DNA of 64,000 nt from Amoebophrya sp. A120 (GCA_905178155.1 CAJINV010000013.1:1202392-1266391); one strand, 5' to 3'; shown: positions 1-64,000, counted from the first letter of the stretch. The notes: a model not told the origin generated them from the letters alone. Made by a program: numbers and translations.

Positions 1-3000
1 TCTGCCCCGCCCCGCCGGCGACATCAAAATACCCGGAGTCCACCGGTGCGTACCCGAGCAAAATGTCACTCTCTGACTTCGCTTTACTCAAATTCGCGGC
101 GTTCGTCGCCTTCAGGTCGTCCAACGTCTGCAATAGCCCTTGTTCAGAGGGCGAAAACACGGGGAGTGAACGGTCATGGTTGATACCGCCTTGGGTGTTG
201 TTGGGCACGTTAACAACTTTCGGACTTTTCAGTCTGCTCGTGTTCTGGTTCAGTAAAACTTTCGTCCCTTGTGCTGCTCCTACTGTCCTCTGTTTAATAC
301 CAGAAGTGAAGCCCTTATTGGTTGCGTTCGAAGGTGTCGCACTTTTGGAGGCTCCAGCGTTCGCTGCGGCCGCGATGCAGCCGCGCATACTCGGCACAGC
401 GATCCCTACGTTGCTTCCGGGCGTTGTCGGCGCGGTGTTTATTTGACGCTGGTGTGCAGTAGTTGTGTTCGCCAAACCGCGACTTTCTGGCGTTTTCCTT
501 CCGAGTGAATAGCTGCTTGTTCCCAAGCCACTCAACAATGCTGTCCCAGCACCTCCCCCTCCGGCCGACACGAGTGGTACATTGCTCGGCAGCCCGTCAG
601 TCCGCGGCTTCGGACCGCCCTGCAGACGCAGCCGCATCGTGCCGGCCGCGGCCGTCGGGGCGCCGGTTAGGAGATTTATGTTGTGGCTTGTGGAAGAAAC
701 CAGAGTCTTAGTCGGCGAAACCGCGTTCCCAACACTGGCAATTCCGCTTTTCATCATATCACTGCGGAAATTTACGTTCTTTTCACTGTGGAAGTTCAAC
801 GCGCTCTCCGGCTCGAAAACGTCAAAATTTCGCAGCTTGTGCGGGGTGGTACGAGACAGGAACTCCTTTTCGCGGGAAACGTCGGGCAGCAGCTTCTTGC
901 TGCGGTTGGTGACATCTTCAGCTGATGCAGCTCCTGCTGCTGTTGAGCCGATCCCTACAGTTGCATTGGTTGTTGAAAAGCCTGTGCAGTTGTCCAGACT
1001 GCGCACAACATAGGCGGTCTCCTGCTTCCAGTAGTCCAGTTTCATTTTCTCGTCGTATTTGAAGCCGAGTCGCGGGGAAAAACCCACGACGTCAGCTTTC
1101 TCGAACAAATCGGGACGTTTCGCGTCCGTGTACCTAGTGAGGAAAGAACTACCTTGGTTCATCTTCGCTAGTGCCGTATTTTCACCTACTTCCCTTGGCG
1201 CTCCCTCCGTGGCTCTTTCGGCGTCGGTTTTGCTGTCGAGGTTCTTTGAAGCGCCCTCTTGTGGATTTTTGTCCGCCTCCGCGGTCGTGGATGAACCAGG
1301 AAAGGTCACCGTAGTTGCAGCTCCAGAATTAATCTTCTCCTCCACCACCACCCGTTGTGACCGGTACGCTGCGGGCGAGTACCGACTCACGTCACCGGTA
1401 TGGCCCTGTGGAAGTTTCGTCCGACCGCGCTTTTCGTCCTTTGCGCGCGCGCTGCCGGACCGGGGGGTGCGCGTACCTTCCGGTGGAAGTTGAAGAAGTA
1501 TGATGGGCATTGCACATCAAGACTACTACGCAATAGAAGCACGATCATGCATACGAAAAACAGCATGAAAATAAGGATAAGTTCTCTAGATCTAAAGTAC
1601 TGGCCGAGCTCATCGCCGGCGACAGCTTCTTCCTATCCGACATGAAGGTGTTGTCCAGCAACCCCGACTCAAAATTCGTCCTGGGCGAGGGCAGCGTCTT
1701 AGTGACGCGCACCGGTCGCTTGTGCCGGCCCGCGCCGATCGCGTTCACGGGGCGGTGGTGGTGCGGGTGGAGGTGGTGATGGTGTTGGTCGTAATGATGT
1801 GGCGCGATTTCCTGTTTTTTCCGATGTTGAGCGGGGTCGCCCGGCCCCCCAAAAGCGCCAACCACGGCGTTCGTCGAGTGCCACGAGGCGCAACTAGCAT
1901 CCAGTGGCACATTTTTCTGTTGACCCTGGGTATAATTTGTATGCATATGCCGATGAAGAACTTCCTCTGCTCGGTAGTGGCCGAAAGCGAAATCAGCCTC
2001 GTCCTCGAGCTTCTCGAGCACTTTCTATCAAATGTAAAAATGTCTGGGTCTGGAAGATTCTGACACTTGTCATGCACGTTTTGGATGAACCCTGATGTCT
2101 GTGATGCATGCCCTAGCAGCACAGATTTTTTGAGAGCTTCTTGATGCCTATTCCGCATGACAAATGCCCTCTCCGCGTAGCAAGAATTACATTCCCTTTG
2201 GCACTCATGCAATACAGATTTTTTTGGAATCCAAATGCAGCATTACAAGTTGGATTCTTCCAGACCCAGACATTTTTACATTTGATACTTTCACCCCGTT
2301 GACAAATTTGGGCAGCCAGTACCCGCTGTCCACACACAGCCACTTGTCGCTTATCCTGAGTAAAAATGTCCCCACACCAGAGTCAAGATGGCAAATCTGC
2401 TAGACAAATCTACAAGCTTTGGCTGTCTTGCATAACAAATTTGGACTCATAGCGTAGTGCTGTTTGAACTACCTCAGAAGCATCACAGATCTAACACATC
2501 ATGCTGATTGGAGCATGGCAAATTCCAAAACACGACTAGAAAATGCTTCTCATGGGGATCCGCATGAGAAACATTTTCAGCATGAGCATGCAGATTTGCA
2601 TTACAACTATGGTGTGGGGACGTTTTTCAATACGATATCGCTCTTGTCGAACATAGCCGTGACAATTTCGTTCCGCTTCACCCCGCACTTCTCCGCAGAG
2701 TCTTCGTTATCAAATGCAAATATGTCTGGGTCTGGAAATTTGTAATGCTGAGTTGTGAGGAGTGAACTCTCTGTAATGTTGCACAGCCAAGCATGAGAAA
2801 TTAATATTTGCGCTGCTTAGTGTTGATGCGCTTTCCGCATGACAAACTGCGTTCTGCATAACAGGCAACAGGGTCTCTTATTGGACACGCATCACAAACT
2901 TTTCAGTCATGTTGCCAGAGAAGCATGACAAATCTTGAATCCGTCCAGACCCAGACATTTTTGCAGTCGATATTCGTAGCTCGCTTTCAGTTTCCGCGGG

Positions 3001-6000
3001 TCGACGAGCAGCTGGGTCTCGTCCGGGTACTTGTAGTAGGGAATTGGGGTTATGGAAGTGCAAATGTACTTCCGGTTCTGGTTGCAGGATATCAGCATCT
3101 GTTTTCGCTGCTCAACAAGCTCGTTAGTATCAAGACTAGGCGACGTGGCCGCGCTGTGACTTGAAGAGGAAGGGTTGTTTGATATCGTAGGTGTTCCAGC
3201 TCCAAAGTGCTGGTAGTGAAATTGGTTCTTATGCAGGTCCCGCTTCGACGACGCAATCCCGCCAAAAACCTTCTGGCAGTAGCTTTCCAGGTGCTGTTTC
3301 GACTTCTGTTGGAACTTTTCGTGGTCGCGCGGCGTCACGTAGGTCAGGTAGTTTCTGTTCGTGTAATCCATCTTCCTGTTCATGGACTTTGTCTGCAGTA
3401 AGAACTTTCCCGCGGAATCGAACGCCCGCGACGCCTTGTACTGCGTCAACAACGTGCGGCAGTACAGCGTTTTGAAGTACCCCTGGACGCCCGCGATCGC
3501 TTTGGCCTGCTGCACTACGCGCAGCTCCCGCGCGGCCAGGACTGCTTTGTATCGCTTCCAGTTTCGCTGGAGTATCAGCGCCGCCCGGTTTTTCTTCACG
3601 TCGATGGCTAGCTTCCGGCAGTGCAAAACCTTGCACATCACGTTCAAATTCGTCATCGCCTTTTTTCTCCTTTCTTTCTCTTTGGCGAGCTTCAATTCCT
3701 TCAGCAACTTCCTTGCTTTCCGACACAAAATCGCGTTCAGAATCACCTCCTTTGCCCGCCGGATCTTCTTTAAGTACGCCCGAACGTTCCGCTGGATTTT
3801 GATCGCGGAAATGCGGTAAAACCGGAACCGCTCCTGCGCCCGGCCGAGGCAGCTGGTGAACAGGAAGAGAGATTTCAATTGCCGCACCCGCTTGATCTGC
3901 TTCTGGACCTGCTGCATCCGGATGAAGGCCTGCATCTGCCGGACCTTCTCGACGTCGCTTTCGAATTTCGCGATCACTTTCCGGCCCCGCAAACTGGCCT
4001 GAATCACGTTCGCCGCGGGCCGGAGCTGCTCCAACGCCAGCCGTTTCTGTTGCAGCAAAACCCGCTGTGCCGCACGGGTGAAGAAAACCTTTTGTGAGAT
4101 CAAGGTAGGGTTGAAGAACCAACGACGCAGAGGCGACCCCAACCAGGTACATAAAGCAACAAGAACGAAGAATGTTGAGCATTGGGATTCAAAAACTGCA
4201 CATCAGAAGCTGAACATGAAATTCATCAGTGAACCCAAACCTTTGCGCTCGCTGTCAAAACAGTGTACTCCTTTGCAGTAAGTACCATGGTCTTCCCCAC
4301 GAAGGCTGGTGGGTTTTGCTTCTTTTTGTTCGCCGTATCGTCCACCGAAGAACTACCCGCTTTTTCTTCCCCGACCAGCCCAGACTTCAAGAGCCATGCG
4401 ACGATGTCTTCGGTCGCTTTTTTACACATCGCGTCATCCATTTTTGTTGGATCGAGGCCACAACTTCGACTGGCAGTGGTGGTGCCTGCTTCTGTTCCGC
4501 TCTTCGTACTATCTCCCGCTTGATTCTGTTGTTCCCCAACAGACTGACAGCTGACGAGCAATAGAGGGAAGAACTCCTTTTCCGAAACGAATTCCCGGAA
4601 GCTGGTGCGGTAAGCATAGCCTTTTCTCCTGAGTTGTATGCTATCCAATATCGACAACGACTGTAACTGCTGCAAAACCATTTTTGGTTCGAACAGCAGC
4701 GGTTTTTTAAGCCGGTTCGGCTTGATGCAGCGCACGAAGTGTCCCCTATCAAATGCAAAAGTGTCTAGGTCTGGAGACTTGTGATGCTAAAATGTGCATG
4801 ATGAAAACACTTCCGAATGCAGTCCGGCATGACAACCTCCCAAAACGCTTTCTCATAGGCAATCCGCATGAGAAACTGCGTTTTTGCATGACAAAAGAGG
4901 CTGCGACTTTTGTTGGTTATGGAATACAGATTTTCTCGGTATGCGTATAGAACGCTAGCATTACAAGTCCCAACCTTCCAGACCCAGACATTTTTACAAT
5001 CCATATCCCCGCGCCTGGTTCAATTTCGTCATCAAATTTTCCATCGACCGCGAAAACTGTGCCCCGATGAACGACGGCTTCGGCTCTTTCTTGGAGGCTA
5101 ATGCGGTCGTAGAACCAGCCTGCTGTTCGCGTTCAGCGAACGTGGATTTCGTTGCGTCTCCTGCCGCGGCGTTACTCATCGTCCCGTTCTCGTTGAGCTG
5201 AAAAGCCTCTTTCAACAGCGTGTTTTCACTCATTTTCAGCAGCTGCAGTAGACTCGGGTCGAGCAAGTCCATATTTTTGTTCCGAAAATCTTTCGCTGTG
5301 TAAGAAACCACAGCCGAGCCGTGCAAGATCGTGAAGCACTCGCGCTCGCGGGCGGAAAATTTTGGCTTCAGCAAGTACACTTCCGACGGCGGTGCAGCTG
5401 CACCACCAGCATTACTCCCACCTCCTCCGCCAGATGAAAACGTCTTGTTCACTTTGTTGCAAAAAGCTTCGTCAGACCCTTTCGACAGCAGGCACTGCTC
5501 CTCCAGAAACTGTAAAATGCCCGGATTTTTCTTCTCCTTCGGGTTATCCATCAGTTTGATGATCCCAGTGTTGTCTTTGTACAAGGACTGCGTTTTATTT
5601 CCGTCTTCGCCGCCTTGATCAAACACGATCGGGCAGTTTTCCCGTTTCAACAGCGCAATTTCCTCCTCAAAAACGTGTTTCAAGAAGAATTGCTGCAGCC
5701 TTTCGTTTGCAAAGTTGATGAAAAACTGCTCCAGCGAGTTTTGTTGGAAGTATTCGAAGCCAAAAATGTCCAGAATGCCCACCCACTTCTTCACTTCCTT
5801 CGTCTTCGCGTCCGGCTGGATCTTCTCGTTCAACTTGTAGATCAAATGTTTGAACAGCTGTTCGTACACCCCCCTCGCGACAGAGAGAATCATGTCTTTT
5901 GCGGACTCCTGGGTCCGCGGCGTGTAGGTGACGGAGCCCGTCGGCATCTTCCGCATCTTCAAAGAGATCGCTTTTACCGCCAGGCCCTGCGAGCAAGCAG

Positions 6001-10931: not shown

Positions 10932-11049
10932 AGCGGTTTCTGTAAGTACGAACCAACTCGTGATAAAAAATCAGCGAATTGTGTACTTTTGAGTAGTCTT
11001 TTTTACAGCGGTTTCTGAAAATACGAACCAACTCGTGATAAAAAATCAG
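10932..11049. repeat. Intergenic direct duplication of about 43 bp
   Basis: AGCGGTTTCTG(T/A)AA(G/A)TACGAACCAACTCGTGATAAAAAATCAG at about 10932 and 11007. Confidence 0.8.
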
Positions 11050-17300: not shown

Positions 17301-20300
17301 TCTGATGGCTCTTGTACTTCCTCCTGCTCCTCTTGCCTCGTCGCACCGTTTGGTTCTTCCGACCCTCCCACCTGCAGCGCAGTCTTATTTGTCTTGTCCG
17401 ACTCTTTTATTTCCTCTTGACCTCCATGATCTACTTCTCCGACTAATGCCTTGACTTCCTCGGACGCAGCCCCTTCTTCTTCTGCGTCTGACTTTTCGAT
17501 CTCGTCCTCTGAAGAGTCATCTTCTGGTGGCAACAGCGTTTCCTTTTTCGGAGGTTTCGATGGCTTTTTCGGGATCGGGGACTTCACCTTTCCTCCAAAG
17601 GTTGTGCCGTGCTTCCCCCGAACCCGGTCGCTCCTCGCCACCGCCAGCAGGCGCCGGCCCACATCCGGGTCGACCGGCGATTGCGGGGGCAGAAGGCGGT
17701 CGCGGTCCCCAGGATTCACGTCCTCGCTGTCGTCCTGCTCTAACAACTCAGGCGGCACCTCATCATCCCCAATGGTGAGCCCCTTAAGTCCTGCAAAGAA
17801 CCCGAGTGGGTCGAGTTATGGAGTGGAAAAAACTCGAATGTCATCTCGACCTATTGCCGACGCACAGACAGACAGGAGCTGCGATTTGCGGCTTCTGCTA
17901 CGTCTTGCTGCACATCTAATTACCATGTTGACGAATCAGACTTTCATATGCTCCTGCACGTCTTGCATACAATAACTGCGGAAATTATCATGATTCTGTA
18001 CACAAATAGTCCTTCTGCAACATGCCAACAAAACATGACGCTGTTCCGTCTGGCTCGGCAATAAATGAGACCAAGATAAGTAGCAGTTTGTTCTTTCCCC
18101 GGGATACCTCGGGATCGCCGGAGTAGTACATTCCCTGCGTGCACTTCAGATCTCTCTCGATAGCGAGCTGCATGTGCATGTTTAATTCCTCGTCATACTC
18201 GATTTTTTGGTCCAGGGCACCGCCAACTACATTGAGAGCGGGAATTTGCTCTGCCCCCTCTTCACCTTCTTCAGACGAACCATCAACAACATCATCGTTG
18301 TCCGAATCTTCATTCTCCTGCGCACGAGCGCTTTCATCATGTTCCTGTCCGTCCTCCCCTTCTACTTCAATGTCGCTGTCGTCCTGGATTTTTGCGGCAA
18401 GTACCTCGTCATCGTATTTCTCCTGCTCCAAAATAGCCCACTTCATGTCGCAGTCCTCTTTCCCGGCAATGGGGAGCTTTTGTTCCTGTTCCACTTTTCC
18501 TTTCTCAAGATGACGGTCTTCCCCCGCCAGCGCCTCTTCTTCGTTCTGACTCTTTTCGTCGAGGTCCTGATCGGAAATTTCCTCGTTGCTGTTATTTTGC
18601 CCTTCGCTTTTCGTTTTCTCGCCCTCAATAACGATATCATCTTCTTCAGAGAGAGCTTCTTCGTCGTTTTCGAAAAGCCCCGGCAAGAACGGCTCTCGCA
18701 TCCTCTCGCTGTCAAACACAAGGCTCTGCATCCTCTCGCTGCTACCCCATTCTGCAATAATTTCCGCATTCTCTTCATAGAATTTCATTATTTCGTAGTC
18801 GTCGTCGTCTCCTTGTAGTTCACTCTTGTCAGGAGCATTCTTTGCTTTCCCTTCACCTCGACCTCCATCGTCGTTTTCGCTGACAACATCGTCGTGTTCT
18901 ACTTCCGAACCTTCCGACATCGCATGATCTTCGGAAAAATTTCCAGCTTCGAGTTGTGCCGCAGCGTCACGATTCCGTGCTTCCTTGGACGGTTCATCAA
19001 AATGATCCTCGTTGTGGTCCTCTCGTGATTTTTCTTCTGACTGTTCCTCCTCAACGTGGTCGGCGCTGGGTTCCTTATCGATATCGCTATCGTTTTCCTC
19101 CTGTGAAACATCATCCTCGTTGTCGCTTTCATTCACCGCAACAGCTGCATCTGAATACATTGAAGGGCAACTTCCAATAAATCATGATGTAGGCTACAAG
19201 TGCTTCTACAAAATGTCACTCTAGTTTTTTCTCATTTCACCCTTAACTGCAAGTGGTCGGAACATCAAGCGCCGAAGAAAAGATGATGAAAATGGCAGGA
19301 CACAACATCAGACGACAAACGTTGGTCGAGGACATCAGGGACCATCAAAAGTAGTAAGCAAGTACCATGATCGGCTCCCTGGAGGTCGTGTTCCTGGGAC
19401 ACAGAACCTCCCTCCGCATCCACCTCCATCGGGTGGTCGGAACTAGGCTCCTCCTCCTGCCCGCCGATGGCCGGGGTTCTCCCTGCTTCCGCTATTGAGA
19501 GGAAAAATCTCCCCTCCCCATATTGCAAAGGTATGTCTCCGATAATTTCTCATGCTGATTTGTGACCACAAATCACGCCTGTCTTGCAAGACGGCAAATG
19601 GAAAGAATCCGCCGCCTTGTGAGGGCGGTTTGTAATGCTGTTTCACCAACATGGCAGATCTCTTCTATGCTAAGCGCCTACAACAAAACACCCCTACGCA
19701 GGCTGAGGCTTTGCCTGTAGTGCCTCACTGCAAAGCTGATTTGTCTTTGTGTACACAAATCCAGCAACAGAAGTTTCCGTTTCAATATGGGGAGGAGGGA
19801 TCTTTCACTTGGATATCCGCACGACCTTCTTCATCCACCCCAAAATCGGAAAAATAGGAGACTGCTGTTCGACCCTGAGCTTCCAGACTCACACTCACAT
19901 GGTGTGGACTTTGTTTCTGAGTGTGTCAGGATCGAAATCGACGAAGTCGAAAGGTTTGTGATGCAAAACATGTAGGGCACTGAAGGCCTGCCTTGGGGAC
20001 CAGGTAAATGAGACCGATTGTGAGCCTGCTTCGGGGTATACAATGTGCTGCCAGGGTAGCATAACAAGAGCAGTCTTCTTTGCCCAAACAGTATGACGGA
20101 TTGGATTTGGGTTCTCCCGAAATTTGTCATGCGCCACGTAGAAACTGAGGCTCCAACTGACATCGATTTTATGCGTCACAAATTTTTCGATTTTGTCAAT
20201 TTCGATTCTGACACTTCCATATTGTTCGCTGTATTCGTCGGAGTCTTCCACTCCTGAGTGGTGGGGCATCGCATCCTCACTTGACGAGGCCTCATCCACC

Positions 20301-20794
20301 GCGAGAAGCTTCTTTTTCTGATTCCTCGAAGATTTAGCCCCTTTGTTCGCTGCCGGAAGTTCTTTGTCTTGTTTATCCTTCTCTTTTTGTTTCTGCGTCT
20401 GCCCCCCGGCGGCCGAAGAGGCGGCTGCGGCAGGCGGCGCATTCTTACTGTTATTCGCACAAGAGGACGAGGAAGAGGACGAACCACCCGCAGCACTCCC
20501 AGCTTGTTTATTACCTTTTTCCTTTTCCACCTCTTCCTTCACAAGCGGGGCCAACCTCGTGTAGATCCGCTTTGCGTTTTTGTTCTGCGCCAAAAAGTCT
20601 TCCATCGCCTGGCTGTTCCCCTCCAAGTAATTGTGCACGTTCTCAAAGGAGTGGAGCAAGTCTTGCTCCTTCCAGTGGGCCAGTATCGTGCCGCGGAGCA
20701 CCTTCCTGGTGCCCTTCAAGACGGACTCCAGAAGGGCCCGACAGTCCGACTGCCGGTTTTCCCAGATCGTTCTCGCCTCCTCGGAAGTGGCCAT
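11342..20794 (-). CDS. Very large multi-exon acidic, low-complexity protein with a Cys/His-containing central domain; function unknown
   Basis: ORFs 19895-20818, 19265-19528, 17988-19160, 15647-17758, 14565-15650, 12056-12928 and 11342-11650 chain in frame. The joins use GT-AG introns (e.g. 15510-15676, 13034-14585, 12045-12216, and two around a small exon near 17924-17975) and removal of TIR elements 19916-20221, 19493-19815 and 11614-11892. Contains CPYC...CC...H...CTTC and an AKAKAK tract. Confidence 0.65.
11614..11892. mobile_element. Family B TIR intronic element, 279 bp, inverted relative to 2352-2637
   Basis: TIR TATCCTCTGTAAAAACGTTCCCGCCCCATA / TATCCTGTGTAAAAACGTCCGCACCCCATA; TSD GTGAT. 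Removal gives IARWLDRDHRGYVP. Confidence 0.92.
13095..14521. repeat. Tandem satellite, about 14 x 104 bp, inside a predicted GT-AG intron (13034-14585)
   Basis: GTTCCGTCCAAACCCAACTCAAAAAGG recurs every 104 bp (13351, 13455, 13559 ... 14495). Internal units are nearly identical and edge units are diverged. Confidence 0.95.
19493..19815. mobile_element. Family C TIR intronic element, 323 bp
   Basis: TIR TATTGAGAGGAAAAATCTCCCCTCCCCATATTG / TATCCAAGTGAAAGATCCCTCCTCCCCATATTG; TSD TCCGC. Removal gives GVDEEGRAEAGRTP. Related to 63119-63439. Confidence 0.88.
19916..20221. mobile_element. Family D TIR intronic element, 306 bp
   Basis: Imperfect TIR of about 50 bp (core TGTCAGGATCGAAATCGACGAAGTCGAAAGGTTTGTGATGCA), with TC instead of TA at the left end; TSD TTGTT. 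Removal gives EYSEQSPHHVSV. Related to 63486-63793. Confidence 0.88.
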
Positions 20795-21057
20795 TTCGCT
20801 ACTCCAGATTATTCTCAAATTGCGACCCGGAAAAGGATTGCAGTGTAAGCGAAGGGCCTTAATGTAGTTTCACAACTTTCTAAAAACACTTCAGACAGGG
20901 TAGGATGTCTGTTTCGCGTTTCGTTTCAAAACCCGTGGTCCGCCTCCGCTCCACTAGCAGGGGGACAAAAATAAAGTAGATCAAGGTGGTTGCTAGACAA
21001 CAGACGCATGCAAATCTAGAAGCCAAATAATCTTTTATTTGTTCTAAAATGATGTAA

Positions 21058-21350
21058 ACAAATCTCCATCAAATTCAAAAACTTGAAAAGTATTTTTCTT
21101 GAGCTCTAGAATCATCAGAAGAAGGAAGTACACTAAAAGTTGTAAAAGTAAATGCGTATGGCCAAAAGATAATACGATTCAAATATGAGCTATCGCTATG
21201 TATTCCCAAAATCAAAAAAGGTGCAGTCCCTTCCGCAGATGGAGCTGGAGGACATCTAAACGTCATGATAATATACACAAATCTCTATCAAATTCAAAAA
21301 CTTGAAACGTATTTTTCTTGAGCTCTAGAATCGTCAGAAGAAGGAAGTAC
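21058..21350. repeat. Intergenic direct repeat pair of about 74 bp
   Basis: ACAAATCTC(C/T)ATCAAATTCAAAAACTTGAAA...CAGAAGAAGGAAGTAC at about 21058-21130 and 21277-21350. Confidence 0.85.
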
Positions 21351-22328: not shown

Positions 22329-25300
22329 CTACAGAAACTTCGCCCAGAAATCATCGCTGGTCAACCCATGCGTCGCCAAACTGCTGTCGTACACCGGGAT
22401 GTGCAGGTTTCTCGAAAAAACATCCCTCGAAGGTACCTTTTCTTGCAGCACGTCCACGGGTATCAAGTTGCCGAAAATTTTCCGCTCAATCAGGTCGTAG
22501 TTCTTCTTCTCCTGCACAGAATCGGTTTCGTCTCTACTTCCAATCGGCACCGTGAGCTCGTCCGCAAACCGGCATTCTTGTGGCTCAGAAAGGTCGAGAA
22601 AGCCATAGTAAAACTCCCGGCGATCCACCACGTCGTTGCAGAATAAGTTCGAGGCGTTAGTTGTGCTGCTTGCTGATTCTGGAGTTCCACTACGATCATG
22701 TTGACCAAAGCCGCCTTCAAATACGCGGAAAGCGGAATCCAAGACCGACGTGCGAGAATTATCGTGTGCAGTGGTAGTTTCCAACGTGCTTACAGGAACA
22801 CCTGCTTCCGGTGGAGGTGCTGCTGCTGTCACATTTGTGATAAACTCCTGCAGTCTTTCCTTCATAATTTCGTCTACGACCTTCACTTGTGCCGTCAGAA
22901 TACGCTGTTTGCGGCGAGAATTTTTCCTCCCTTCACTCGCAGAAGAAGTACGCGCTGTGCTATCTGTTATTTCATCCAGTTCACTTTGCAAGAGCTGCAG
23001 TTGAGCCGCCGAGACACTGGTTGCAGAGCCATCGTCTTGTGGAGAGAGAAATTTCTCTTTCCATTTCGTTATTTCCGTGGGAAATGAAATTTCGTAGCTG
23101 TATACGCGATTCTCAGCCTGTTGCAATTGGTTCTTCGGCACGTGCATCTGTTTTCCGAAGCCAAGAGTGCGGAGGAGGAAGGCTTTGTGCTGCCCACCTT
23201 TGCCGGCATGCGTACTTGAACTAGATTCGAGGCTCAGTTCAGCCTGAGGAAGTCCTGCATCGCCGCCATTTATCGTAGCGGTACCATCATTTTCCGCTGT
23301 GTTCACCGCCATCACCGAAATGTAGGCACGCTTACGTCGTGCAGATCTGCTTCCAGGATTTCCCCTGCTCCGGACGGACCGCTGAGTTCTTGTCTTAGCA
23401 GATAAATTCCCTCGCGGACACAGGCCAGCATGTTGGCAGAGATACTTCCAGTCGCGAATGGGGCAGGGGAGAAAACAGACGCGCTTTTCGGTCAAGTATC
23501 TTCGATAGCTACCCCGGAGGTCAGAAGCGATTTCGCTGGAGGTTGGGGGAATGCTGCTGGACTTCGTGTGCCGGCGGTTCTCGTACTCTTTCGAGAGGTA
23601 TTGCAAAAAGTCCGACACAGAAACAAAATCACCGTTTCCATTTTCCTTTTCATTTCTCGTCAGCGTGTCATCCGAAAAGAGCACACTGTCAAAACGACGA
23701 GCGCTTGTTCCTGGGCTGAACCACTTTCCTCCAGCGCGCAGCGCGATGGCGGTCGCGAGATCTGCCTTCTTCGAAAGCATCGACGCGTCCTGCTCTCGAG
23801 GAGCCTCTGGAGGTTCTGGGGTCGCTGCTCCAGCTGACTCCGCTTTCGCGGCCAACAGCCTTCGCACCAGCTCATCACTGTCCACTAGCAATTCCGCAGC
23901 CCGCCAGCTATTTTTCACCTGCAGTGACTGCGAATGATAAGCAACGCTCTTTTTATTGTCCTTCCCGTCTTTAAAAGCGGCTGGCGGGATAACGCGGCTC
24001 GCTTCGTCGCGTACAAGCTGCGCAGTCACACCTTCGACGTCGGTGAGTTTCTGACAGCCGAGCTTGGGCTTGCCGCCACAGGAAACCACCATCGGCGCGT
24101 GGTACCGCACGACGTTCACTTGTTCCATTTTCAGGAGTACAAAGCCCAGCAATGCCTCCATCGTCACCTCGCCGTCGCCCCATTGCTTTATCATGCCGTC
24201 GTAGTGTTTGCGAATAGACAGGTTCCAGAACGTGCGACGGAATTGGGCGGAGTCTAGCAGAGCAGCTGCTAGTCGTGAGCCTACAGCTGATCCACCAAAC
24301 GGGGTGGATTTTCTTTCACCGTTGCTACTAGTGTTTTTGAAATAGGGCTTCGCGGCGAGTTGAGCTAGAATTTGGGTGAGCAGGGCGGTATCTTGCGATG
24401 CAGCAAACGGATTGGTGTCTGCTTGCCAGGAATTATGCGCGAAGATATTGCGGCCCGCCATTCTTGACTGCGACCATACTTCTGGCACCAAAAAGCGTTT
24501 TGCGCGTTGCGCCCAAACGGTCGCGGCTCGGCGGGTGCACACCGCGTGGTGGTCACAAATGCCGCCCCAGTCGTCCCGGATGCACGGGATGTAGCAGGTT
24601 TTTTCTCTGTCCACCACATGTTGACGCCGATTGCGGCGGTTTCGGACATCAACAATGTTTCCCGATGCACGTCCAGAAACAGCGAGGACGTCCTGCGTCA
24701 TCTGGTCCACCCCCGGAAAGGGATCATCTCCCAGCCACAGGTGCTCTGGTTATCGTGAAGAAACTTGGACGAGTCACGCGAACAGATTTTGCAACGAGGG
24801 CCTTGCTGTAGTGGTCCCTACTGCCCATAGCAAAATCTATGTGCCTTGACTCAGCTGCATTTACCTGGAATACTGCTCGTGAGAACGTGATGAAACCGTA
24901 CGTCTGATTTCTTCTCTGTTCCTCTTCCGCGATCCTCCTATCGCATGGAAAATTCTGCCAGAGCTTTCAGACTTGGGTCACTTCAACATTGATTTCTGTT
25001 CCACCAAGAATCACAAGCACAACAACGAAAAATTAGAAAGGAGCGAGCCAAGTGAGGATCCAAGTCTGAAAAAATCAGCGACGAACAGACCTGTTTGTTC
25101 ACGATACATCTTCTCACACACGTAGGCATCGTACAGTTGAAAGATTGCCGACAACCGGACACCCAGCTTCAGCTCGCGGAGACGCACCGTGTAGGTGTCG
25201 TTGTGAAAGCGACTGCTGAGAGCACCACCATTCGCGGCGAAAGCAAGATGTTCGCCTTCATCTTGTTTCCCCCCCTCATCATTTCGCTCTCCGCCACCAG

Positions 25301-44798: not shown

Positions 44799-46189
44799 CT
44801 ACTGCAGTACTCGCACCAAGGTAAGGCCGTCTGCGATGCCCACTGGTATGCTTGGAAAGCCGCATTTATTTGTTCTGGCGTTTAGTCGGACATGCATGGA
44901 CATGCAAATAAAAATCTAGTCGGACATCGAATTTCTTTGTCGCTGGATACATTCTTGCTACGCCCACCATCTTTCTTCATACACGTCATCGACAGCTGCC
45001 ATCTAATTTCCTTACTCAAGGCTAAGATCGGAGTTTGACCAGGCCGAAAAAAATACTGCTTTACTGTTCCCCGATGGATACGCAGGACGATGTCGACCCG
45101 AGGATCACTCGCGAGTTTCTCGTTTACCGCCTGGATTCCCTTTGCGTCCGCGGTTTTTTGGTCCTCGGGGGGCAAGATGAATTTGCCGAAGTACAGAGTG
45201 TTATCTATGGCGATGATCCCGTTCTTCTTGACCAACTGGAGTGCGCACTCGTAGTAATTTGGGTAGTTCGCTTTGTCTGCGTCGATAAAGCAGAGGTCGA
45301 GCGATATTCTGATTAAAAACGACCCTGCTCCGTATTTGTTGCACAAATCTGCAATGGATCATGCACAGAAAAGAATGAATGGCTTCTTATGCGCAGCCCC
45401 ATGAGGAGCACTTCGTAGTGGTGTTTCTGAAATATTTTCAATCATGTCCTAATCGGGATAAGTAAAGCGGTCAGGAAGTTGTGATGCGACATCTCATAGC
45501 CACGAACGGCTGCACTACGCGTCGGAATTATAAAATGCGGAGTTCATCACAAAGCTGCCTCTGGGTTTGTCTAGCAGATTTCCCTTCTTGCCTACGAGAA
45601 CGTGGGGACCAGGTCATGTATTTTTACTCAGCGTAAATGATTTTTTGTAGTTTTCGAACCTATCGTTTAACATCTCCTGCATCTTCTGTAATGCAGGGCC
45701 GACTCGGAAATCAATCTTGCTGCTGACGTTCGCCTTTTCCCAGAATTTTTTTCCGGTCGCTGCGAAATCTGCGGACACGTCCAGACCAACAACCAGTCCG
45801 TCTTTCGGCAGCGCCTGCGCGAAGAGCAACGTCGTGCTACCCCGGAACACCCCGACCTCGAGAACCTTCTTCGCGTCTATCAGCTTGCACAGCCAGGAAA
45901 GAAACAGCGCTTCGTCGGGCGATCCCATCATGTTGGCCTGCGGTAGCGCAGCGATTTCGTCCTCCATGGCCTTAAATTCCGACGTCACAAAGTTACTGTT
46001 GTAATCCAGTAGGTAGCTGTAGGTCTCCGGCACCTGCGCAACGGTCGGCGGTAACTGGTGCTTTGCCACGTTCTGGATTTGCTTATGGCGTTCGTTGGTT
46101 TGGTTTGTTGACAGTTCCGGGTTTAACCCGGCACCCTGGTCACAACACGGCAGGGTTTTTGCGAGCGTGGAGAGGAAGGAAGACAGCAT
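44799..46189 (-). CDS. SAM-dependent O-methyltransferase (caffeoyl-CoA OMT / Methyltransf_3 type)
   Basis: AKKVLEVGVFRGSTTL.FA.ALP.DG, KIDFRVGPAL, DLCFIDADKANYPNYYE, GIIAIDNTL, and a last exon GIADGLTL. One family B element and one GT-AG intron. Confidence 0.92.
45305..45635. mobile_element. Family B TIR intronic element, 331 bp, degenerate
   Basis: Internal similarity to 11614-11892 (TTTGTCTAGCAGAT...CTTG). TA termini. Flanks AGCGA and AATGA match at 3 of 5 positions. Removal gives NYKKS(F/L)DLCFIDADK. Confidence 0.8.
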
Positions 46190-54593: not shown

Positions 54594-57500
54594 TCAGTGC
54601 CGTCGTCCACCGCTTTCGTACCACTTCCAGAGCAGATAGAAGCCGGCGTAGGTGCAGCTACTCAGGAGAACGGGGTCCTCGTTTCTGCGTTTGCCCAGCT
54701 CCTCCCGGAAGGGCGAGTTTCGTAGATATTCCGCAAGGTTCGCCGGATCTCGGAGCCCAGCGCATCGGTATGGACTGGGAAATCTCTCACACAGAGACCA
54801 ACTCGTCATGCGCATCACGATTCAGTGAAAAATTCTTATGCGTCAAACTCGAACAGCAACTGCAAAAAGCTAGCACTGATTCAGTAAAAGCAGAGAGTAA
54901 TACATACAGAGCATATCAATGTCTGTGCTAAAGATTCTACAGCGGATACTAGAGGATTTACGAACGACACCCCCGCCGTTGTGCCGTTTTGGTCCGGATA
55001 TTCCACAGCGCCAGCGGCTCCATCGGCGGCGACATCCGGGAAAAGTTTACCCCAGACGATTCCCGTGCTTTCTTTCGCTATGGCGGTTTCAACGAGGGTT
55101 GTTTCAAACCAGAAACGCAATGTTGGATACGGCTCCTGATTAAAGACACACGCAACAAGAGTCTGTGGCCCACGGAAGATTTTTGATTTTATTGTGCTGC
55201 CGACGTTAACGTAGGTGGCAGTCAATTTCAGCGGCGATAAGTGACGTTTCGAAAGTCGCGCCACTTTCGAAGAATAAATGTGAAAACTACAACAAACAGG
55301 ACAAATGCACCTTCGTCGAGCTTTACCCAAAAAACAAGCTAAGAAGAGATGTGTGTACATAGTGCTCTTGAGAAGTAGCAACAGGAAAGAGGCTAGCCTT
55401 CTCATGTGTATCAAAAGCAGATAACCTGAGCTTTCTTTGTACAAAAAACGCTAGTTCTTTCCTGCCATGCTTCAAACCACTAATATCCTTAGGTCGCTCC
55501 CAGTTTGGGAGCAAAAATCTTTTCTGATTTGAAATTTCCTGGACGTGGACACGCCATATTCGCATCTTCGTGCGGATTTCTTTTCCACAACTCCAGTACC
55601 CTGTCACGCGACACACTGAATTATCGCAGAAAAAAACTCGTGCTTATCAAGATAAGGATGGCGAGATTCTCAGCACTTTTTTTGCTCAGCAGGTGATGCG
55701 GGCTTCTGATTCATGCAGCGTGGTGCTCGTTCCCTGAACAACTCACTGCTGTGGGTATACGCAGATCCTATTTTTACAAAAATGTCCCCGCAATACCAAG
55801 ACAGTGACAACAAAATTTTCTTCCAGGATATGACCCGCACCAGGTACACGAAGAGTGGCAACCCGTCGGCCCGTTCCGTGAGGCCAAAGCACTGCTTTTC
55901 CACGATCAGGTCCTCGGTGATGCCCACTTCTTCGGTCACTTCCCGCACCGAATAGAATTCGGCGTACAGGGTCCCGACATCGTCTACGTTCGTCAACTTG
56001 GGTTCGTGAAAACCGCCCCAGATCGAGTAGAACTCCGGTAAGTTCGGCGTGTTCCTCGCGCGTCTTGTGCCACTTTCAGGTCGTGGGAAATTGTCAAAAT
56101 ACACACAAGTCACAATTCCCGATTGCAATGCGAATCAGGGCGGTGTGGAAAAATGCCTTTCGGCCGTGACCGTGAGTCGTCCTTTTTGGCTTTCTGAGTG
56201 CCTTTCTAAATCTGTAACCGAGACAGACACAACTCTGTTTGTCACCAGAGTGTTTCAAAGAGCATAATAGCCCACTGCGTTTGGTAATTACCATGATGCC
56301 CGTATTTTATGACCGTAGTCAGCCGTGGACTGCTGTTTGCTTCAGTTCCCTGATGCAAAAGAGTATTTAGGTTTTGCTTTTGCGTCCGCCTTTAGTAGAG
56401 TAACAAATTGCAAGATGAATCCAGTACAAGTTTATGATTCGAATCTCGATCGATTTCCCACCTGCCACTCATCCCATACGCTTCATCAGGGCCGTAAAGT
56501 TGTCCGATGTTTCGATCAGAATCAGGTGTTATCACCTAGAAAAAAGCCAGCATATCACATTTGAACAAATTGCGATGCCGGGATAATTCTAGCAGGAGCT
56601 ACTGCTAGTGCTCGGAGAACAATTGTTGTTCTTGCGAACAATATTTTTACCAAGTGATAAATTACTGCTCGGCTGCGCAAGGAAGGACCGAATCCCGAGA
56701 GTTCCGTTTGGACCAGCGCCGGGTCTTCGTGCAGCAGCTGCAGCCTCTTCTTTGGCGTGTAACCCGGAACGTCCATCGCCCAGAACGGTATTGTCAACGT
56801 AATGCTCTCGCACGCAGCTCGTGAAAGTCGCGGTACCGCGGCCAGGCTCCGCAGGACAACCGTCCTTAAGATCGTCGTGGTCGTGCACACGATAAAAAAT
56901 TTTCGTCGCCTGTATCAAGAAAAAATCTCCTTCCCGGAGGGAGCAACAGCCGGGCCTACACCTAAAAGCAAGTAAGCTGACTGTATGAACTGCGCACGAT
57001 TCCCTATCTTACTTTCTGATGCGCCAGGACAAAGCACGCCGTCGTAAATTGCGCAGTCTCTTCAGCGACCAATGATCGTAATTCCGTAGATTAAGTTCAT
57101 TCTACTAACCTCATACATAGGTCGTAACTACCTGCTCCGGCGCAATATGACGACCATGCGATTTAGAATGTCGAATAAGGAGCAGGCGCATCTACTCAAA
57201 CCTTCTTTCTATTGCAAGTCGTTCAAGTATTGCCAACACAGCTAAACGATGTTGCGCCACTTCTAGAAGCACTGCAAGTCTTTCGGTACTGCTACTCACG
57301 TTGTCTTTCAGTTTGTTCGCAACTGACCTCCCAGAAGTAGACGCACTAATTTGCAATGCTTACTGGCTTCCAAGGTGCGCGGTATTGGCACGTCCACACG
57401 ACCGGGCTGCAACACAGCGAGAGTGGCTTGAATGCACTGCAAAAGGATCGACCCTTCTCAATTTTTATGCGGAGTTACAACCAACGGCGACATCTGCACA

Positions 57501-58829: not shown

Positions 58830-61800
58830 CTACATCTTTTTCTTCCCTGTCTTCGTACTACTCCCTTTGCCTTTATATCCCTTTCCGCTGCCATTCGCCG
58901 CCGTCGCATCGTGCCGGAATGGACAACTACCCGCTCCCTTCGTACACTTCCCCTTCAGGAAAAAGGTGCACACCGGCGCCTGAGCCTTGTCGTGCAGGAA
59001 GGGGCACTGGGCGCCCCGGGTACAGGTGCCGCGGAGGAAAAAGCTGCACACGTCGGCAGTACTGACGGTGGTGCTTGTAGAAGAAGTCACTGGCTGCGCA
59101 ATTGTTCCACCTGCTGAGAAAAAACCGCCACTGGCTCCGCCGCGCGCGGCCGGAACGAATTCGGGCACTGCAGCGCTCAAAGTAGCTGCGTTCGCACCTT
59201 GGAAAAATGCGGGCCTAGCTTTTGCTTGTGAATCATCACGCTGTGCTGAGAAAACTGTCTGTTCTGTCGGACCGTGCGAAATTGAGGACGACAGCAGCGC
59301 CATTTGGCTCACCACTTTGAGCGGAAAAACCTCCGCGGCGGTCTCGTCGACCAAAGCAGTGAGCGTTGTTGGACGTGTAGTCGCACCGCTTCCTGAAGTT
59401 ACTTCCTCGCTCATACTCTCCTCCGAACAGCCATCCGCTTCCCGCAGCTGCGCGGCGAGGCGGCGCAGGGCCGTCAGATCGTTGAACTCCGCACGCGTGT
59501 CCAAGTCGTGTAAGCTGACGGAACAGCATGCGTTCCAGATGGTGCGCCACAGAAACGACTGCGGCGCTCCGCCAAAAGTGCCCGATTGTGCGCTGGAGGT
59601 CCCTGTCATCGTCCGCAGACAGCCGACCACGTGGAGTCCCTGCTTGCACCGGGAGAGCGCGACGTTCACCCGGTTCAAGTTGCTCGTGAAGCCGATTTTG
59701 TTTTCCCAGTTGGCCCGGCAAGTAACCAGAATCACAAAGTCCGACTCCGAGCCCTGCGCGGCGTCCACCGTGATCACGCGGATGGGCCTGCGGAGGTAGT
59801 TGGTTTTCGACCCGGCATAAATCTTCGGTAGCAGCTGCTTGAGCACCTGTGTCTGCGGTTTATACATGCAGATGATCGAGATTTCGGCGGTGGGTTTCTT
59901 CAGGTCCGGATGGGTCAACAGCAACTCGCAAACCAGCTTCGCCTGCGCCAAGTTCACGTACGAATTCCGACACGGCTGCTCCAGGGTGCGGACGTCAGGC
60001 GCTGCGAATGATGCTGAGGGGCCCTTGTTGTAGTAAACGCCCGACTTATTTTTTCCACCGTCAAAACTCTGTTGAAAATCACTGCTTCTAAGTTGCGCGA
60101 AGTCGTGCCACACAAGCTGTAAATTTGCGGCAGCGAAAGAAGAGCGTCCTTCTGAGGCATTGTACTCGTGTTGCGGAGGGCCGTGCGGGTGCTGCTGTTG
60201 GGGGGCGTAATAACTTGTTGGCGCGGACGAGGACCACTTCTTGTTGTTTCCATAGTACTCTATTTCCTCTCTTTTCAAAACTGGCACCAGTTCCTCCTTG
60301 CCCGCGAAGGTTTCCAGTTTGCCGGAATAGCTCAGCTTGGACACGTATCAAATGTAAAAATGTCTGGGTCTGGAAGAATGCAACTTGTGATGCTGAATTT
60401 GGATTCCAAAAAAATCTGTATTGCATGAGCAGCAAAGGGAATGCAATTTTTGCTACGCGGAGAGGGCATTTGTCATGCGGAATACATAGGCATCGCGAAG
60501 CCTTCAAAAAGTATGTGATGCTAGAGCATGCATCACGGACATCATGGCCAATGCAAAACATGCATGACAAGTCTCAGAATCTTCCAGACCCAGACATTTT
60601 TACATTTGATAACACGAGGTCGCACACTTTGCGTGGCATGCGGTACTGGACGTCGAGCAGGGAAAACCGTTTCCCGCTATCCACGCAGCGCTGCATGAAG
60701 CTCCGGGTCACGCACTTCTTCTCCAGGGCAAACGGGGGTTCGACGGACAACACCAACGGCCCCAGCTGCTTGTGGTCCCCCAGTAAAACGAGGTTCTCCG
60801 CGTGCAAGTCCAAAAGCAAAGGCAAGTTTTCCTCCCCGGTCGCGCCGGCCTCGTCCAAAATTGCGGCGGCAAACTTTTCCGGGAACACGTTCGCTTCGAT
60901 GAAATTGTTCTCTGAGGGAGCATTGTTACCCGTGAAAAGTTTCTGCTGCTGGTGCTGTTCCGACGATTCATCCCCTTCTTCAGAATCAGTATAATCCGCA
61001 AGCTGCGTTATTCCAGTGCCTGGAAATAACAACTTGTCCGTTTTCGTCTTCCCCGCCCCACGTGGTGGCGCGTCAGTCCCGACTACCTTCCTCTTCCCGT
61101 ATTCACGCTTGAGCAGAGCCAGGTGGTATGTGCTTGCGATGGTGCACAGGAACACATTGGCCTCCTTGACCACCCGCAGCTCTGCGCCGGCCATGGCCTT
61201 GGGTAGATACACCAGCTCCAGGTACTGCAGGGCGTTTTTTAACAGTTCGATGGTTCTTTCCGTCTTCTGGTGTACGAAGCTTTTCACCGCAACTCTCGCC
61301 AGCAAGTACCGAAACTCATCCATCTTCTGCTGGAGCCGCCGTTCAGGGGAAATGTTCATCATCTGTGCCTCCGTAATAGTTCGCCCAGAAAACTTGCGTA
61401 CGCCTCTTCGTAACGTCATCAGAGGGCGCAATTTGTACATACTCGGGACAATACCGCTGCTGCTATTACCGCTGCATGCCAACCCTGATACGGCGGGAAC
61501 AGGTTCTTGCGATTCCGATTTCAACGCCGTCGTAGAATTAGTAGCACTATCGCCGCTGATGTCAACAAGCCCAGCATGATCTGAATTGCTTTTACAACCT
61601 CCTCCTCCGAGCAATCTCTGTATCCGCCGCTCTTGCAGTTCTTCCAACGCCTGGACCCACTGTCGCAATTTCGCTTCCACCGAGTTCTTCAAAAAGTTCA
61701 CGAACGAATCCCGCTCTCGCGCTTTCTTCTTCAGCGTGAAACTTCCCGCGACCGGGCCCAGGCGCGCCGGGTTGCCAAGCACCAGGGTGTTGACCCCCTT

Positions 61801-64000
61801 GTTTTCCAGCGCGCACAGCTTCTCCGCGACGGACTCAATCGCCACATTGGTCACCGCAGTGATGATAACCGCGGGCCGCTTGCTGGGGTGAGGCGGGGTA
61901 GTAGTTTTCGACACGACAACTTTCTGTGCGTCTACAAGATCTTCATTTGCCGCTGGTATAATTTTCCCTCCGCCATCTTCTTGCAGCGGAAGTTTGTCTC
62001 GATTTTTTCTGCTTTCGTCCGAAATTGTAGCACTTATTTGCTGCTGTTGTTGTACCTCGCCCCGCGACAGGAACGCACGACAGACGTGGAAAATCGTGGT
62101 GGACTTTCCGGTTCCTGGCGGGCCCTGGATCAGGTGGAGTTTGGAGTGCTTTTCCTCGTGCAGCTTGTCCACCGCCCGCTTTTGCGCCGCATTGATCGGC
62201 ACAAGGACTTCTGGGTAGTTCGGGTTCGCTGGGCTACTAGATGTAGTAGTGCTGGCAGTCGACGTAGTTCCGGCCACCGCGGACGAAACAGAAGTGGAAG
62301 GAATTTTCAGACCACTAATACTTGGGTCAAAATTTTCATCTGCTGGTACTGCGACTGCCGCTTCTACACTCCCTTGCAGCTTCTGGTGCAGCATTCCAGG
62401 GTTCAGGACGAAATCTTCCAGAGTTGGGGGTTTATCTTGTCCAGTCTCTTGTAGCGCAGCATGCGCTGCCGCTCCGCAAAGAACATTCGCCTTCTCCGCC
62501 ATCGCGAGGCGCTTCATAATCGCAGTGTACTGCGACACCAGAGTACCCACGAACGCCACGACGTGAAAAACCGTGCCCACCCCGCCTTTCAGCCCGGTAA
62601 GAAACACCGTGTCCGGGCGGGACGGGAACTTTATTCTTCCGTTCTTCCGTGGTCCTATCGTCTCCCGCACGGTCTGGATGTGGAAATACTTTTTTTTCCC
62701 GACGGAGCCTTCCTTGTCCGGGCCCGAACTTTTGGTAAACACCACCCAGTCCCGCAGCCCCAGTAGCTGCAGCCGCCGTCGCTCGTTTTCTACTTCGTCT
62801 CTGGTTGCGTTTTCCACCATTACATTCCGCGTGCGTCTCGCGATCTTAGCTGCTTCTTTCCGCTCCGCCTTCGACATACTATTCTGGGCTCCCGCGCCGG
62901 GATCGTCTGCTTTCCCTTTCCCCTGCATCAACGCACTTCTGGGTGGAATTTGGGCGGTGGGTCGCTTGGACTGCAGCTCCTCCTTGTTCGCGGTGCTGTC
63001 GTCCTCTTCGTTTTTACCCTTACCACCACCGACGGAAGCACTCGCGTCCGCGCTGCTCGCGCTTGCGTTGGACCCCTTGAGCAGCTCGAACTCGTGGTAC
63101 CCCGTGGATTGGTCCGTGTATCAAAGTGAAAAAAGCCCCCACCCCATATCGGAAACGGAAGATGCGCGAATTTGTGATGCTGTATTTGAGTACACAAATC
63201 AACTTGTATTGCTAGAAGGCCAAGAGACGAAGCTGCGGCCTAAATTGCAGGTAATCTGTCATGCTGTTTCCCACTTCCAGTTGCCTTCTGTCATCCTGGA
63301 GCTGCAAGGCTTTCCCACGCTAGACAGCACTACAGTCCGCATCTTTTGCCTTCTAGCATCACAAAGCTGATTTGTGACCACGTATCTGCATCACAGATTT
63401 CCGTTTTGATATGGGGAGGGGGCATTTTTCATTGTAATACCGTGTGCGTCTTGACCACGCGGATCTGCAGCAGAAACTCCTCGAATATGGGAGTGTCAAG
63501 ATTGAAATCGTCAGAGTTGAAATGATTTGTCATGCATAAAATGCAATACAAAAAGTGACTCTATTGCAGAGGACGCACGGGAGGCAGATTATAGTCCTGG
63601 TAAGGGTCAAACGTTGGACTGCTGACTAGCATGACAGAAGGCAGCTCTTTTGCCCTAAACCGCATGACAGACTCGCTTCCAGGACCGGGGAAATTTGTCA
63701 TGCACCGACTACAAACTGTAGGTCTAACTGGTATCCGTTTTATGCATGACAAACTATTTCAACTTTGACGATTTCAAACCTGACACATCCATATCGAACG
63801 CCGGGTGCGTAGTGGTCACGGCGGTCAGATACTGCTGCTTCACGTTGTGTCGCAGGGTGCTGTAGTAGTCCTTTTTGGAACTGTAATTGGTCTCCATCGG
63901 CTGAAACACGATATCCGTCTGCGGATTTACCAGCGCGTTCGCCTCCGCGAGCAGCTCCTCGTGCGGCTGCGTCCGAGCAGCGCGAAGGTTCTGCTTCCGG
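58830..64000 (-). CDS. Superfamily 1 (Upf1/SEN1/DNA2-NAM7-like) helicase with two C-terminal CCCH zinc fingers; 5' end beyond the window
   Basis: LIQGPPGTGKS, TAVTNVAIE, ILDEAG, LLGDHKQLGP, LDVQYRM, SIICMYKPQ, TVDAAQGSE, IGF...NRVNVALSRCK. Fingers CSFFLRGTCTRGAQCPFLH and CTFFLKGKCTKGAGSCPFRH. Three TIR elements interrupt it. Confidence 0.93.
60346..60611. mobile_element. Family A TIR intronic element, 266 bp, inverted close copy of 25421-25682
   Basis: Perfect 32-bp TIR; TSD ACACG. Removal gives QYRMPRKVCDLVSKLSYSGKL. Confidence 0.95.
63119..63439. mobile_element. Family C TIR intronic element, 321 bp
   Basis: TIR TATCAAAGTGAAAAAAGCCCCCACCCCATATC / TATTACAATGAAAAATGCCCCCTCCCCATATC; TSD CCGTG. 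Removal gives VVKTHTDQSTGYHEF. Confidence 0.9.
63486..63793. mobile_element. Family D TIR intronic element, 308 bp
   Basis: Imperfect TIR of about 56 bp, TATGGGAGTGTCAAGATTGAAATCGTCAGAGTTGAAA...; TSD TCGAA. Removal gives HPAFEEFLLQIR. Confidence 0.9.

Follow-up and report, generated by a model that had tools for sequence, protein, structure and literature searches.

How can a coding exon carry a transposon-like insertion that offers no splice site and still be read? The question was raised by a 64,000-nt stretch of the genome of Amoebophrya sp. A120 (GCA_905178155.1 CAJINV010000013.1:1202392-1266391), referred to here in its whole length as the window, in which thirteen short elements with terminal inverted repeats interrupt genes. 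These elements are very probably introner elements of Amoebophrya sp. A120, namely non-autonomous DNA transposons with terminal inverted repeats that are removed from the pre-mRNA as the element plus 5 nt. The phenomenon has already been published for A120 and the present finding is a rediscovery. An earlier note made on this DNA had cited such introns as described in Amoebophrya, and the window indeed comes from one of the two genomes described in that publication (Farhat 2021, BMC Biology, PMC7789003). There, more than 60% of the introns were non-canonical with support from RNA-seq, and 29,850 repeated introns made up about 17% of the genome. The inverted repeats of A120 were 8-20 nt long with a TAT start and an A-run end, direct repeats of 3-5 nt were present at the boundaries, hairpins were predicted and the mechanism was left open. 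The elements of the window share with these introner elements the genome, the inverted-repeat signature, the boundary direct repeats and the lack of a consensus, and no difference in kind was found. A120 was also included among introner-rich genomes (Gozashti 2025, PMC12130899), and a 2024 review placed its introns beside the euglenid nonconventional introns (PMC11282704). What is added over Farhat 2021 is a 5-bp duplication in every sampled family (3-5 nt in that paper), an empty site, a shared motif and a tentative register of the cuts. The phenomenon is striking in that tens of thousands of transposons in coding exons are removed exactly without a splice-site motif.

A repeat scan and direct reading of the sequence showed 13 elements of 259-366 nt in the window. 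All 13 start with TA(T) and finish with ATA, and a perfect 5-bp direct repeat abuts both ends of each element, the repeat being different in all 13. The terminal-repeat alignment scores were 14-33 compared to 13 or less in three shuffles of the window. Internal similarity separated the elements into family A (six copies), families B, C and D (two copies each) and family E (one copy). With their small size, non-coding content and many near-identical copies, they have the properties of miniature inverted-repeat transposable elements (MITEs). The minus strand carries all long open frames around the elements, and all 13 elements lie in minus-strand genes. They are listed below, where X3 and X1 refer to contigs from an RNA-type and a DNA-type run, P0001 and P0043 to annotated proteins and L148 to the orthologous locus in a related assembly.

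2026..2287, minus strand: family A element of 262 nt, duplication CTTTC, in the myosin tail exon; reference orientation of family A; RNA contig X3
2352..2637, minus strand: family B element of 286 nt, duplication TCGCT; RNA contig X3
2708..2972, minus strand: family A element of 265 nt, duplication TTCGT; RNA contig X3; right boundary bridged by DNA contig X1
4747..5005, minus strand: family A element of 259 nt, duplication TCCCC, splitting the myosin motor domain beside HFVRCIKPN; left boundary bridged by DNA contig X1
11614..11892, minus strand: family B element of 279 nt, duplication GTGAT; 145-codon frame restored; open frame only
19493..19815, minus strand: family D element of 323 nt, duplication TCCGC; same site and duplication in the relative (L148 431-751)
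19916..20221, minus strand: family C element of 306 nt, duplication TTGTT; low-coordinate end degenerate; specific to A120, with an empty site in L148
25421..25682, minus strand: family A element of 262 nt, duplication TGTCT, oriented as the copy at 2026; skipped by P0043
25734..25995, minus strand: family A element of 262 nt, duplication ACGAA, inverted relative to the copy at 25421; skipped by P0043
31214..31579, minus strand: family E element of 366 nt, duplication TGTCC; weak terminal repeat; 154-codon frame restored
60346..60611, minus strand: family A element of 266 nt, duplication ACACG, inverted relative to the copy at 2026, in a superfamily-1 helicase gene; skipped by P0001
63119..63439, minus strand: family D element of 321 nt, duplication CCGTG; skipped by P0001
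63486..63793, minus strand: family C element of 308 nt, duplication TCGAA; skipped by P0001

The places, duplications and order of these elements agreed with the earlier note throughout. Its claim that sliding the junction across the repeat gives no GT-AG pair also held, as no GT-AG, GC-AG or AT-AC pair was found in any register across the repeats on the transcribed strand for all 13 elements; by arithmetic, GT-AG is expected to be possible by chance in about 4% of random 5-mers. The occurrence of families A and B in both orientations was confirmed as well, with the family A copies at 2026 and 25421 inverted relative to those at 25734 and 60346, and the family B copy at 2352 inverted relative to that at 11614. 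The ends of families A, B, D and E conform to TAT followed by about seven variable bases and an A-run, and the terminus of family C is TATGG without an A-run. In the element at 2352..2637, bases 5-10 of the terminal repeat were partly decayed and the ends were still paired in the predicted fold.

Deletion of the 13 elements together with one duplication copy each produced minus-strand frames of 609, 516, 321, 223 and 1419 codons, which span 3, 1, 2, 2 and 3 junctions, respectively. The 51 nt left between the elements at 25421 and 25734 formed a 15-codon micro-exon. Domain and homologue searches were carried out exon by exon, and joined translations were used for the frame checks and one local alignment only. 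Across the junction of the element at 4747, the match with the Pfam Myosin_head profile ended at 576 and resumed at 579, and a Pfam domain search placed the two halves of the superfamily-1 helicase on either side of the element at 60346. The restoration of frame claimed in the earlier note, including that in myosin and the helicase, was therefore seen both as open frames across the junctions and as continuity of Pfam domains. These results bear on the reading that the host genes are dead and that the elements are plain transposon insertions in pseudogenes with nothing to remove, for which the stops inside the elements are the sole point. That reading is hardly credible, as the long frames appear only upon exact removal, the domain profiles continue across the junctions, and the exons are 91-98% identical to those of the relative compared to a lower identity of the shared element interiors. 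For the myosin gene it is refuted by an RNA contig that has the joined form.

This contig came from the comparison of RNA-type and DNA-type runs on one 6-kb stretch at the myosin locus, with assembled contigs as the evidence. An ordinary intron of the myosin gene, of the kind that the earlier note had reported from the same genes, served as internal control.

4089..4285, minus strand: ordinary GT-AG intron of 197 nt in the myosin gene; gone from the X3 contig, kept in the X1 contig

The X3 contig (record 10, 2797 nt) aligned with 5006-5691, 4284-4741, 2973-4086 and 1606-2019 of the window with zero mismatches, and 125 unlisted nt of the contig were placed between the blocks 2973-4086 and 1606-2019. 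The joint from 5006 to 4741 skips 264 nt, which is the length of the element at 4747-5005 (259 nt) plus 5. Likewise, the 125 nt equal the 953 genomic nt from 2019 to 2973 after subtraction of the three elements (813 nt) and a further 15 nt. The X3 contig was taken as processed RNA because the canonical intron was missing from it, which also backs the guess that run X3 is RNA. In addition, the joined form is not a retrocopy because the myosin exon is present once, as a single copy, in the assembly. The X1 contig (record 4, 2882-4797, depth 25.9) holds the GT-AG intron and two exon-element junctions, reaching 91 and 51 nt into the elements at 2708 and 4747 at a depth equal to that of the unique flanks (~26), and no empty-site joint was present among the DNA joints listed. 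Because the X1 contig keeps the elements and the X3 contig loses them, they are present in the DNA and gone from the RNA. The loss of the elements is exact to the base and takes place at the RNA level.

The earlier note had allowed for removal in either RNA or DNA, and the same contigs spoke against the second. Removal in DNA in the manner of ciliate internal eliminated sequences would mean that the transcribed templates are already without the elements. Terminal repeats with a duplication are what a transposase would use, and the clean empty site in the related genome described below means that precise absence in DNA exists between lineages. Nevertheless, this alternative is very unlikely indeed, given that the DNA contig bridges two exon-element junctions at flank depth with no empty-site joint listed, that the joined form is marked as RNA by the missing GT-AG intron while its exon occurs once in the assembly, and that the inferred cuts are asymmetric relative to transcription, unlike those of a transposase. 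Ciliate internal eliminated sequences are alike in being transposon-derived, bounded by short repeats and inserted in coding sequence from which they need to be removed precisely, but they are lost from somatic DNA, whereas the DNA of A120 keeps its elements and the RNA loses them.

The annotated proteins gave the same lengths. P0001, the helicase protein of the window (1426 residues), aligned in four blocks that skip 313, 326 and 271 nt, corresponding to the elements at 63486 (308+5), 63119 (321+5) and 60346 (266+5). P0043 (1012 residues, Amoebophrya sp. A120) was 100% identical to the exon of the window and skips 267 nt (262+5) at both 25734 and 25421, where two elements of opposite orientation lie in one gene. 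Overall, removal of the element plus 5 nt, as the earlier note had proposed for RNA, is supported beyond open frames for 9 of the 13 elements, four by the RNA contig and five by annotation. The A25 orthologues of the window proteins were 28-58% identical, and a search of metagenomes with P0001 produced no related locus.

The claim that the elements are transposon-like was borne out in a related genome. A public assembly with the accession prefix JACKZZ01 was found to contain family A ends, and its locus L148 is orthologous to 19063-27062 of the window with 91% identity. L148 shares the elements at 19493, 25421 and 25734 and two decayed introns described below, all with identical flanking 5-mers. 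It is without the element at 19916-20221, where it reads through with a single TTGTT and matching flanks (one case). The elements are considered transposon-like because of this empty site.

The duplication length was then followed in a sample of the genome. The search of the 115.5-Mb assembly with family A produced 4750 first-look candidates, and 40 copies with 95-98% identity were scored. Perfect 5-bp duplications, all different, were present in 37 of the 39 family A copies elsewhere in the genome. A scan anchored on the TA ends, which covered the sample flanks and the window and about 30 terminal-repeat classes, showed 103 perfect duplications, every one of them 5 bp long and none 3, 4 or 6-10 bp. 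For bystander elements of many families the counts were 56 at 5 bp and again none at 3, 4 or 6-10 bp. Among 18 imperfect duplication pairs examined, 13 matched at 4/5 and four at 3/5 positions. These counts suggest that all families share one integration chemistry with a 5-bp stagger. A terminal-repeat scan that was not anchored on the TA ends had been discarded in favour of the anchored one, since it gave noise from tandem repeats, pairs of neighbouring elements and palindromic duplications. At the 12 loci with a confident coding strand, six elements were in sense relative to the inferred coding strand and six in antisense, and nine of the 12 required a deletion whose length is 2 modulo 3 (binomial estimate ~0.004). 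This phase test on the dominant flanking frames replaced a longest-frame test on the 39 genomic copies, which was non-discriminating because the genome has long spurious frames.

When the two 5-mers that flank an element differ, the mRNA reveals which copy was retained. The following three cases were used.

24939..25106, minus strand: decayed element of 168 nt; annotated intron 24934-25106 of 173 nt (168+5); flanking 5-mers 3/5 matching
24751..24872, minus strand: decayed element-like intron core of 122 nt; annotated intron 24746-24872 of 127 nt (122+5); flanking 5-mers 4/5 matching
45305..45635, minus strand: decayed B-like element of 331 nt, splitting a family-3 O-methyltransferase before DLCFIDADK; flanking 5-mers 3/5 matching

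For the intron 24934-25106, P0043 reads CEKMIAEEE, so the upstream 5-mer was kept and the downstream one removed. The intron 24746-24872 has no canonical register, and only the upstream copy is compatible with the SRAEH of P0043. The 5-mers of this 127-nt intron have diverged in the relative, the downstream one at two positions and the upstream one at a single position, a change that by our reading would be synonymous. At 45305, once 336 nt (331+5) were removed, the local alignment with 16 homologues, among them the A25 orthologue, had no gaps. The conserved Phe was obtained only where the register retains 4 nt or more of the upstream copy, and the homologues have Phe, Tyr, Ile or Val at this position, never Leu; the register of this case is given by homologues only. 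Taken together, the three cases tentatively suggest that the mRNA keeps the upstream copy, with the intron being the element plus the 5 downstream nt. They also suggest, again tentatively, that identity of the two duplication copies is dispensable for removal. Elements whose copies agree at no more than 3/5 or 4/5 positions are nevertheless absent from the annotated models, or their removal is needed for an intact conserved methyltransferase, and the proposal of the earlier note that the direct repeat itself is read was not upheld.

The same decayed copies weigh on a further alternative. A stable hairpin between short direct repeats is a classic substrate for template switching, comparable to reverse-transcriptase artefacts and to the slippage excision of bacterial transposons. 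Copy-choice across the hairpin between the 5-nt repeats, whether as an artefact of reverse transcriptase or by RNA polymerase in vivo, would yield the loss of the element plus one repeat in either orientation and without a splice motif. This explanation is very unlikely, since the stops and frameshifts inside conserved genes (myosin motor, helicase and methyltransferase) mean that the cells must remove the elements. Moreover, the X3 RNA contig is one continuous path across five junctions, and the annotated models still omit elements whose repeats have decayed to a match at 3/5 or 4/5 positions, where contiguous identity at the junction can be as short as 1 nt.

Precise removal from RNA is preferred over these alternatives. 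In predicted folds of the transcribed sense, the first base pairs with the last in every element, the stems have 23-50 pairs and the fold energies were 1.6 to 12 standard deviations below shuffles. The terminal stem would bring the exon ends side by side. A CATGACA-type motif, shared by all families, occurred at 16.7 per kb inside 105 elements compared to 1.8 per kb outside, with 3-5 copies in most repeat classes. In about 70% of the elements, one copy lies 30-45 nt inside each end and points inward. The motif looks like a putative sub-terminal binding site, which might serve either a transposase or an RNA-binding factor. At 50472-50537 of the window, a 33-nt unit with GTCATGCATG, similar to this sub-terminal motif, is duplicated in tandem.

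The course of events would begin with insertion under a 5-bp target duplication, often in coding exons, which the host would tolerate by an exact removal that recreates the pre-insertion exon. The removal machinery would be placed by the element termini (UAU, about 7 nt and an A-run, paired with the other end), which are the same in either orientation, and it would not be placed by the identity of the duplication copies. Going by the three cases and reading in transcript sense, the 5' cut would lie 0-1 nt upstream of the element and the 3' cut 5-4 nt beyond its last base, such that the upstream copy stays. The symmetric reader that could be imagined for such elements is not demanded by orientation independence itself, since, owing to the terminal repeats, an element in either orientation is transcribed with the same ~35 bases at its ends.

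As for the enzyme, a structure-measured cut-and-ligate reaction outside the spliceosome, as is suspected for the euglenid nonconventional introns, is quite possible, although we would stop short of calling it probable. The more specific form of this proposal is held with greater reserve: the cuts would be measured from the base of the stem (at the first base and 5 nt past the last) and followed by ligation, convergent with euglenids and with an offset matched to the 5-bp stagger of the transposase. Euglenid nonconventional introns (Milanowski, Guminska and co-workers) are alike in their non-canonical borders, the terminal pairing that joins the ends, duplication-like repeats at the junctions and the presence of ordinary introns in the same genes, as well as in a suspected origin from miniature transposons. 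In contrast, CAG at +4 to +6 pairs with CTG at -8 to -6 in euglenids, whereas bases 4-6 in the families of the window are CAA, CCT, TGA or GGG. Euglenids are also an unrelated lineage, and their introns are excised as a full-length circle after the conventional introns (PMC11282704).

A remodelled major spliceosome, to which the terminal stem presents both cut sites in place of GU and AG, is an alternative to be entertained with some doubt, and a smaller share of the likelihood is left to other mechanisms. A120 has nearly all spliceosomal proteins and its U1 snRNA was not detected (PMC7789003), and the precedent of Fritillaria borealis, which removes transposon-derived non-canonical introns by its own spliceosome, is on record (Henriet 2019 per PMC11282704). 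By our reading, a 5' cut placed 1 nt upstream would give an intron start of N-UAU, similar to +2 to +4 of a GUAU-type donor, and the stems set the exon ends side by side. On the other hand, in no register is the first or last base of the intron fixed, which breaks the known terminal-base pairing, and canonical sites are kept by 98.6% of the introns at positions conserved between strains (PMC7789003), so the core is not generally relaxed for these old introns. No shared branch site or pyrimidine tract was seen, although none was looked for. A search of the genome for U1 snRNA was blank and so was that for U2, the positive control, which makes the result uninformative. The introns of Fritillaria likewise derive from miniature transposons, lack GT-AG borders and are removed efficiently only by the host, but they carry an AG-AC or AG-AT motif and are attributed to the major spliceosome, whereas the cut sites of A120 are without a motif. 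In the introners of Micromonas, Aureococcus, Polarella and other lineages (Huff 2016; Gozashti 2022, PMC9860276; Gozashti 2025, PMC12130899), a transposon likewise creates the intron and the excised piece is the element plus one duplication copy, which restores the exon. There the element and duplication give canonical or near-canonical sites, whereas in A120 the duplications are arbitrary with no canonical register.

Several results weigh against the reading of precise, motif-free removal from RNA. Direct RNA evidence covers 4 of the 13 elements and comes from contigs of a run that was guessed to be RNA, while the elements at 11614, 19493, 19916 and 31214 are backed by open frames only and the other five by annotation. 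Two raw RNA runs under the same species label, X9 and X10, were nearly empty of reads for the myosin locus; they had 9 and 6 reads, all partial, in the element bins, and were set aside as being taken for another strain. The intron 24934-25106 has one GT-AG register and may be an ordinary spliced intron. The register is tentative on this account, as it comes from three cases of which this one may be GT-AG splicing and another depends on a single conserved residue. Finally, the evidence does not tell the spliceosome from another enzyme, and no lariat, circle or intermediate was seen. Elements with diverged duplication copies record which copy was retained in the mRNA, and existing RNA-seq could fix the register genome-wide and so separate ruler-type from homology-dependent reactions. 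To our knowledge, Amoebophrya cannot yet be transformed.

Comparison with the related genome also suggested turnover at shared sites. The elements at 25421-25682, 25734-25995 and 19493-19815 of the window correspond to 6033-6293, 6345-6596 and 431-751 of L148, respectively. At these three sites, five of the six terminal-repeat arms were 89-97% identical and the right arm of the element at 19493 was 71% identical. The interiors were 46-78% identical (about 68%, 46% and 75% for 25421, 25734 and 19493), compared to 91-98% for the flanking exons and 91-92% for the two decayed elements. The copy of the relative at the 25421 site was closest (85%) to the neighbouring A120 copy at 25734 in flipped orientation. 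These identities suggest that copies were replaced in place or underwent gene conversion with one another, as opposed to simple drift. With the JACKZZ01 assembly, it can be scored across the genome where elements were gained, lost or turned over in place.

Further observations were made in other sequences. P0044, a predicted protein of the relative (793 aa), starts at a Met just inside the large exon of P0043 and omits the upstream exons that the elements separate; it was probably truncated because the gene caller could not cross the non-canonical introns. In the window bin 2000-2400, a few reads of X9 and X10 matched the family A terminal repeat only and then continued into unrelated sequence, and the organism of these runs carries related elements at other sites. 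One contig, L125 (AACY023489543.1), contains a family A end that is exact over 31 nt. Its AACY prefix is taken as that of the Global Ocean Sampling metagenome, in which case open-ocean samples would contain A120-like parasites or their elements.

An autonomous partner of the elements was searched for in both assemblies. A 7-kb match with an integrase core was rejected, as its 368-bp direct terminal repeats identify it as a long terminal repeat (LTR) retrotransposon. At two other loci, L002 (contig 13, 1157487-1160795), which lies ~42 kb before the window, and L001 on contig 180, long open frames encode the zinc-binding domain and the core of an integrase, and no reverse transcriptase or RNase H match was found in the 320-430 residues upstream. 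These frames may come from DNA transposons of the integrase type, for which a 5-bp duplication would be fitting. In the related assembly, a search for pairs of ends 600-12000 nt apart produced only a 972-nt family A element and chance pairs. The 972-nt element is at 4324-5295 of L083 (JACKZZ010011803.1), with perfect 36-nt family A ends, a CGCCG duplication and about 4x the usual length.

Two more features of the window resemble the elements.

55079..55558, strand not assigned: possible fourteenth element of 480 nt, duplication TTCGC; weak terminal repeat, score 15 compared to 13 or less in shuffles
31010..31160, minus strand: degenerate family E copy of 151 nt, inverted relative to 31214-31579; no duplication left

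The ends of the candidate at 55079..55558 are like those of a TATGGCG-type family at other loci; it is not clearly in a coding exon, and its removal restores no long frame. The earlier note had mentioned two degenerate copies without coordinates, which were taken to be the one at 31010-31160 and the decayed element at 45305-45635. Perfect 53-nt direct copies at 30833-30885 and 32028-32080, 1195 nt apart, flank the two family E elements and a solo end. At 31866-31920, a family A left end, TATCAAATGTAAAAATG, is followed about 35 nt on by ATTTGAT without a duplication, which could be an internally deleted remnant or a footprint. Finally, a 104-nt unit is repeated about 15 times in tandem over 13019-14670, with 94-95% identity between copies.

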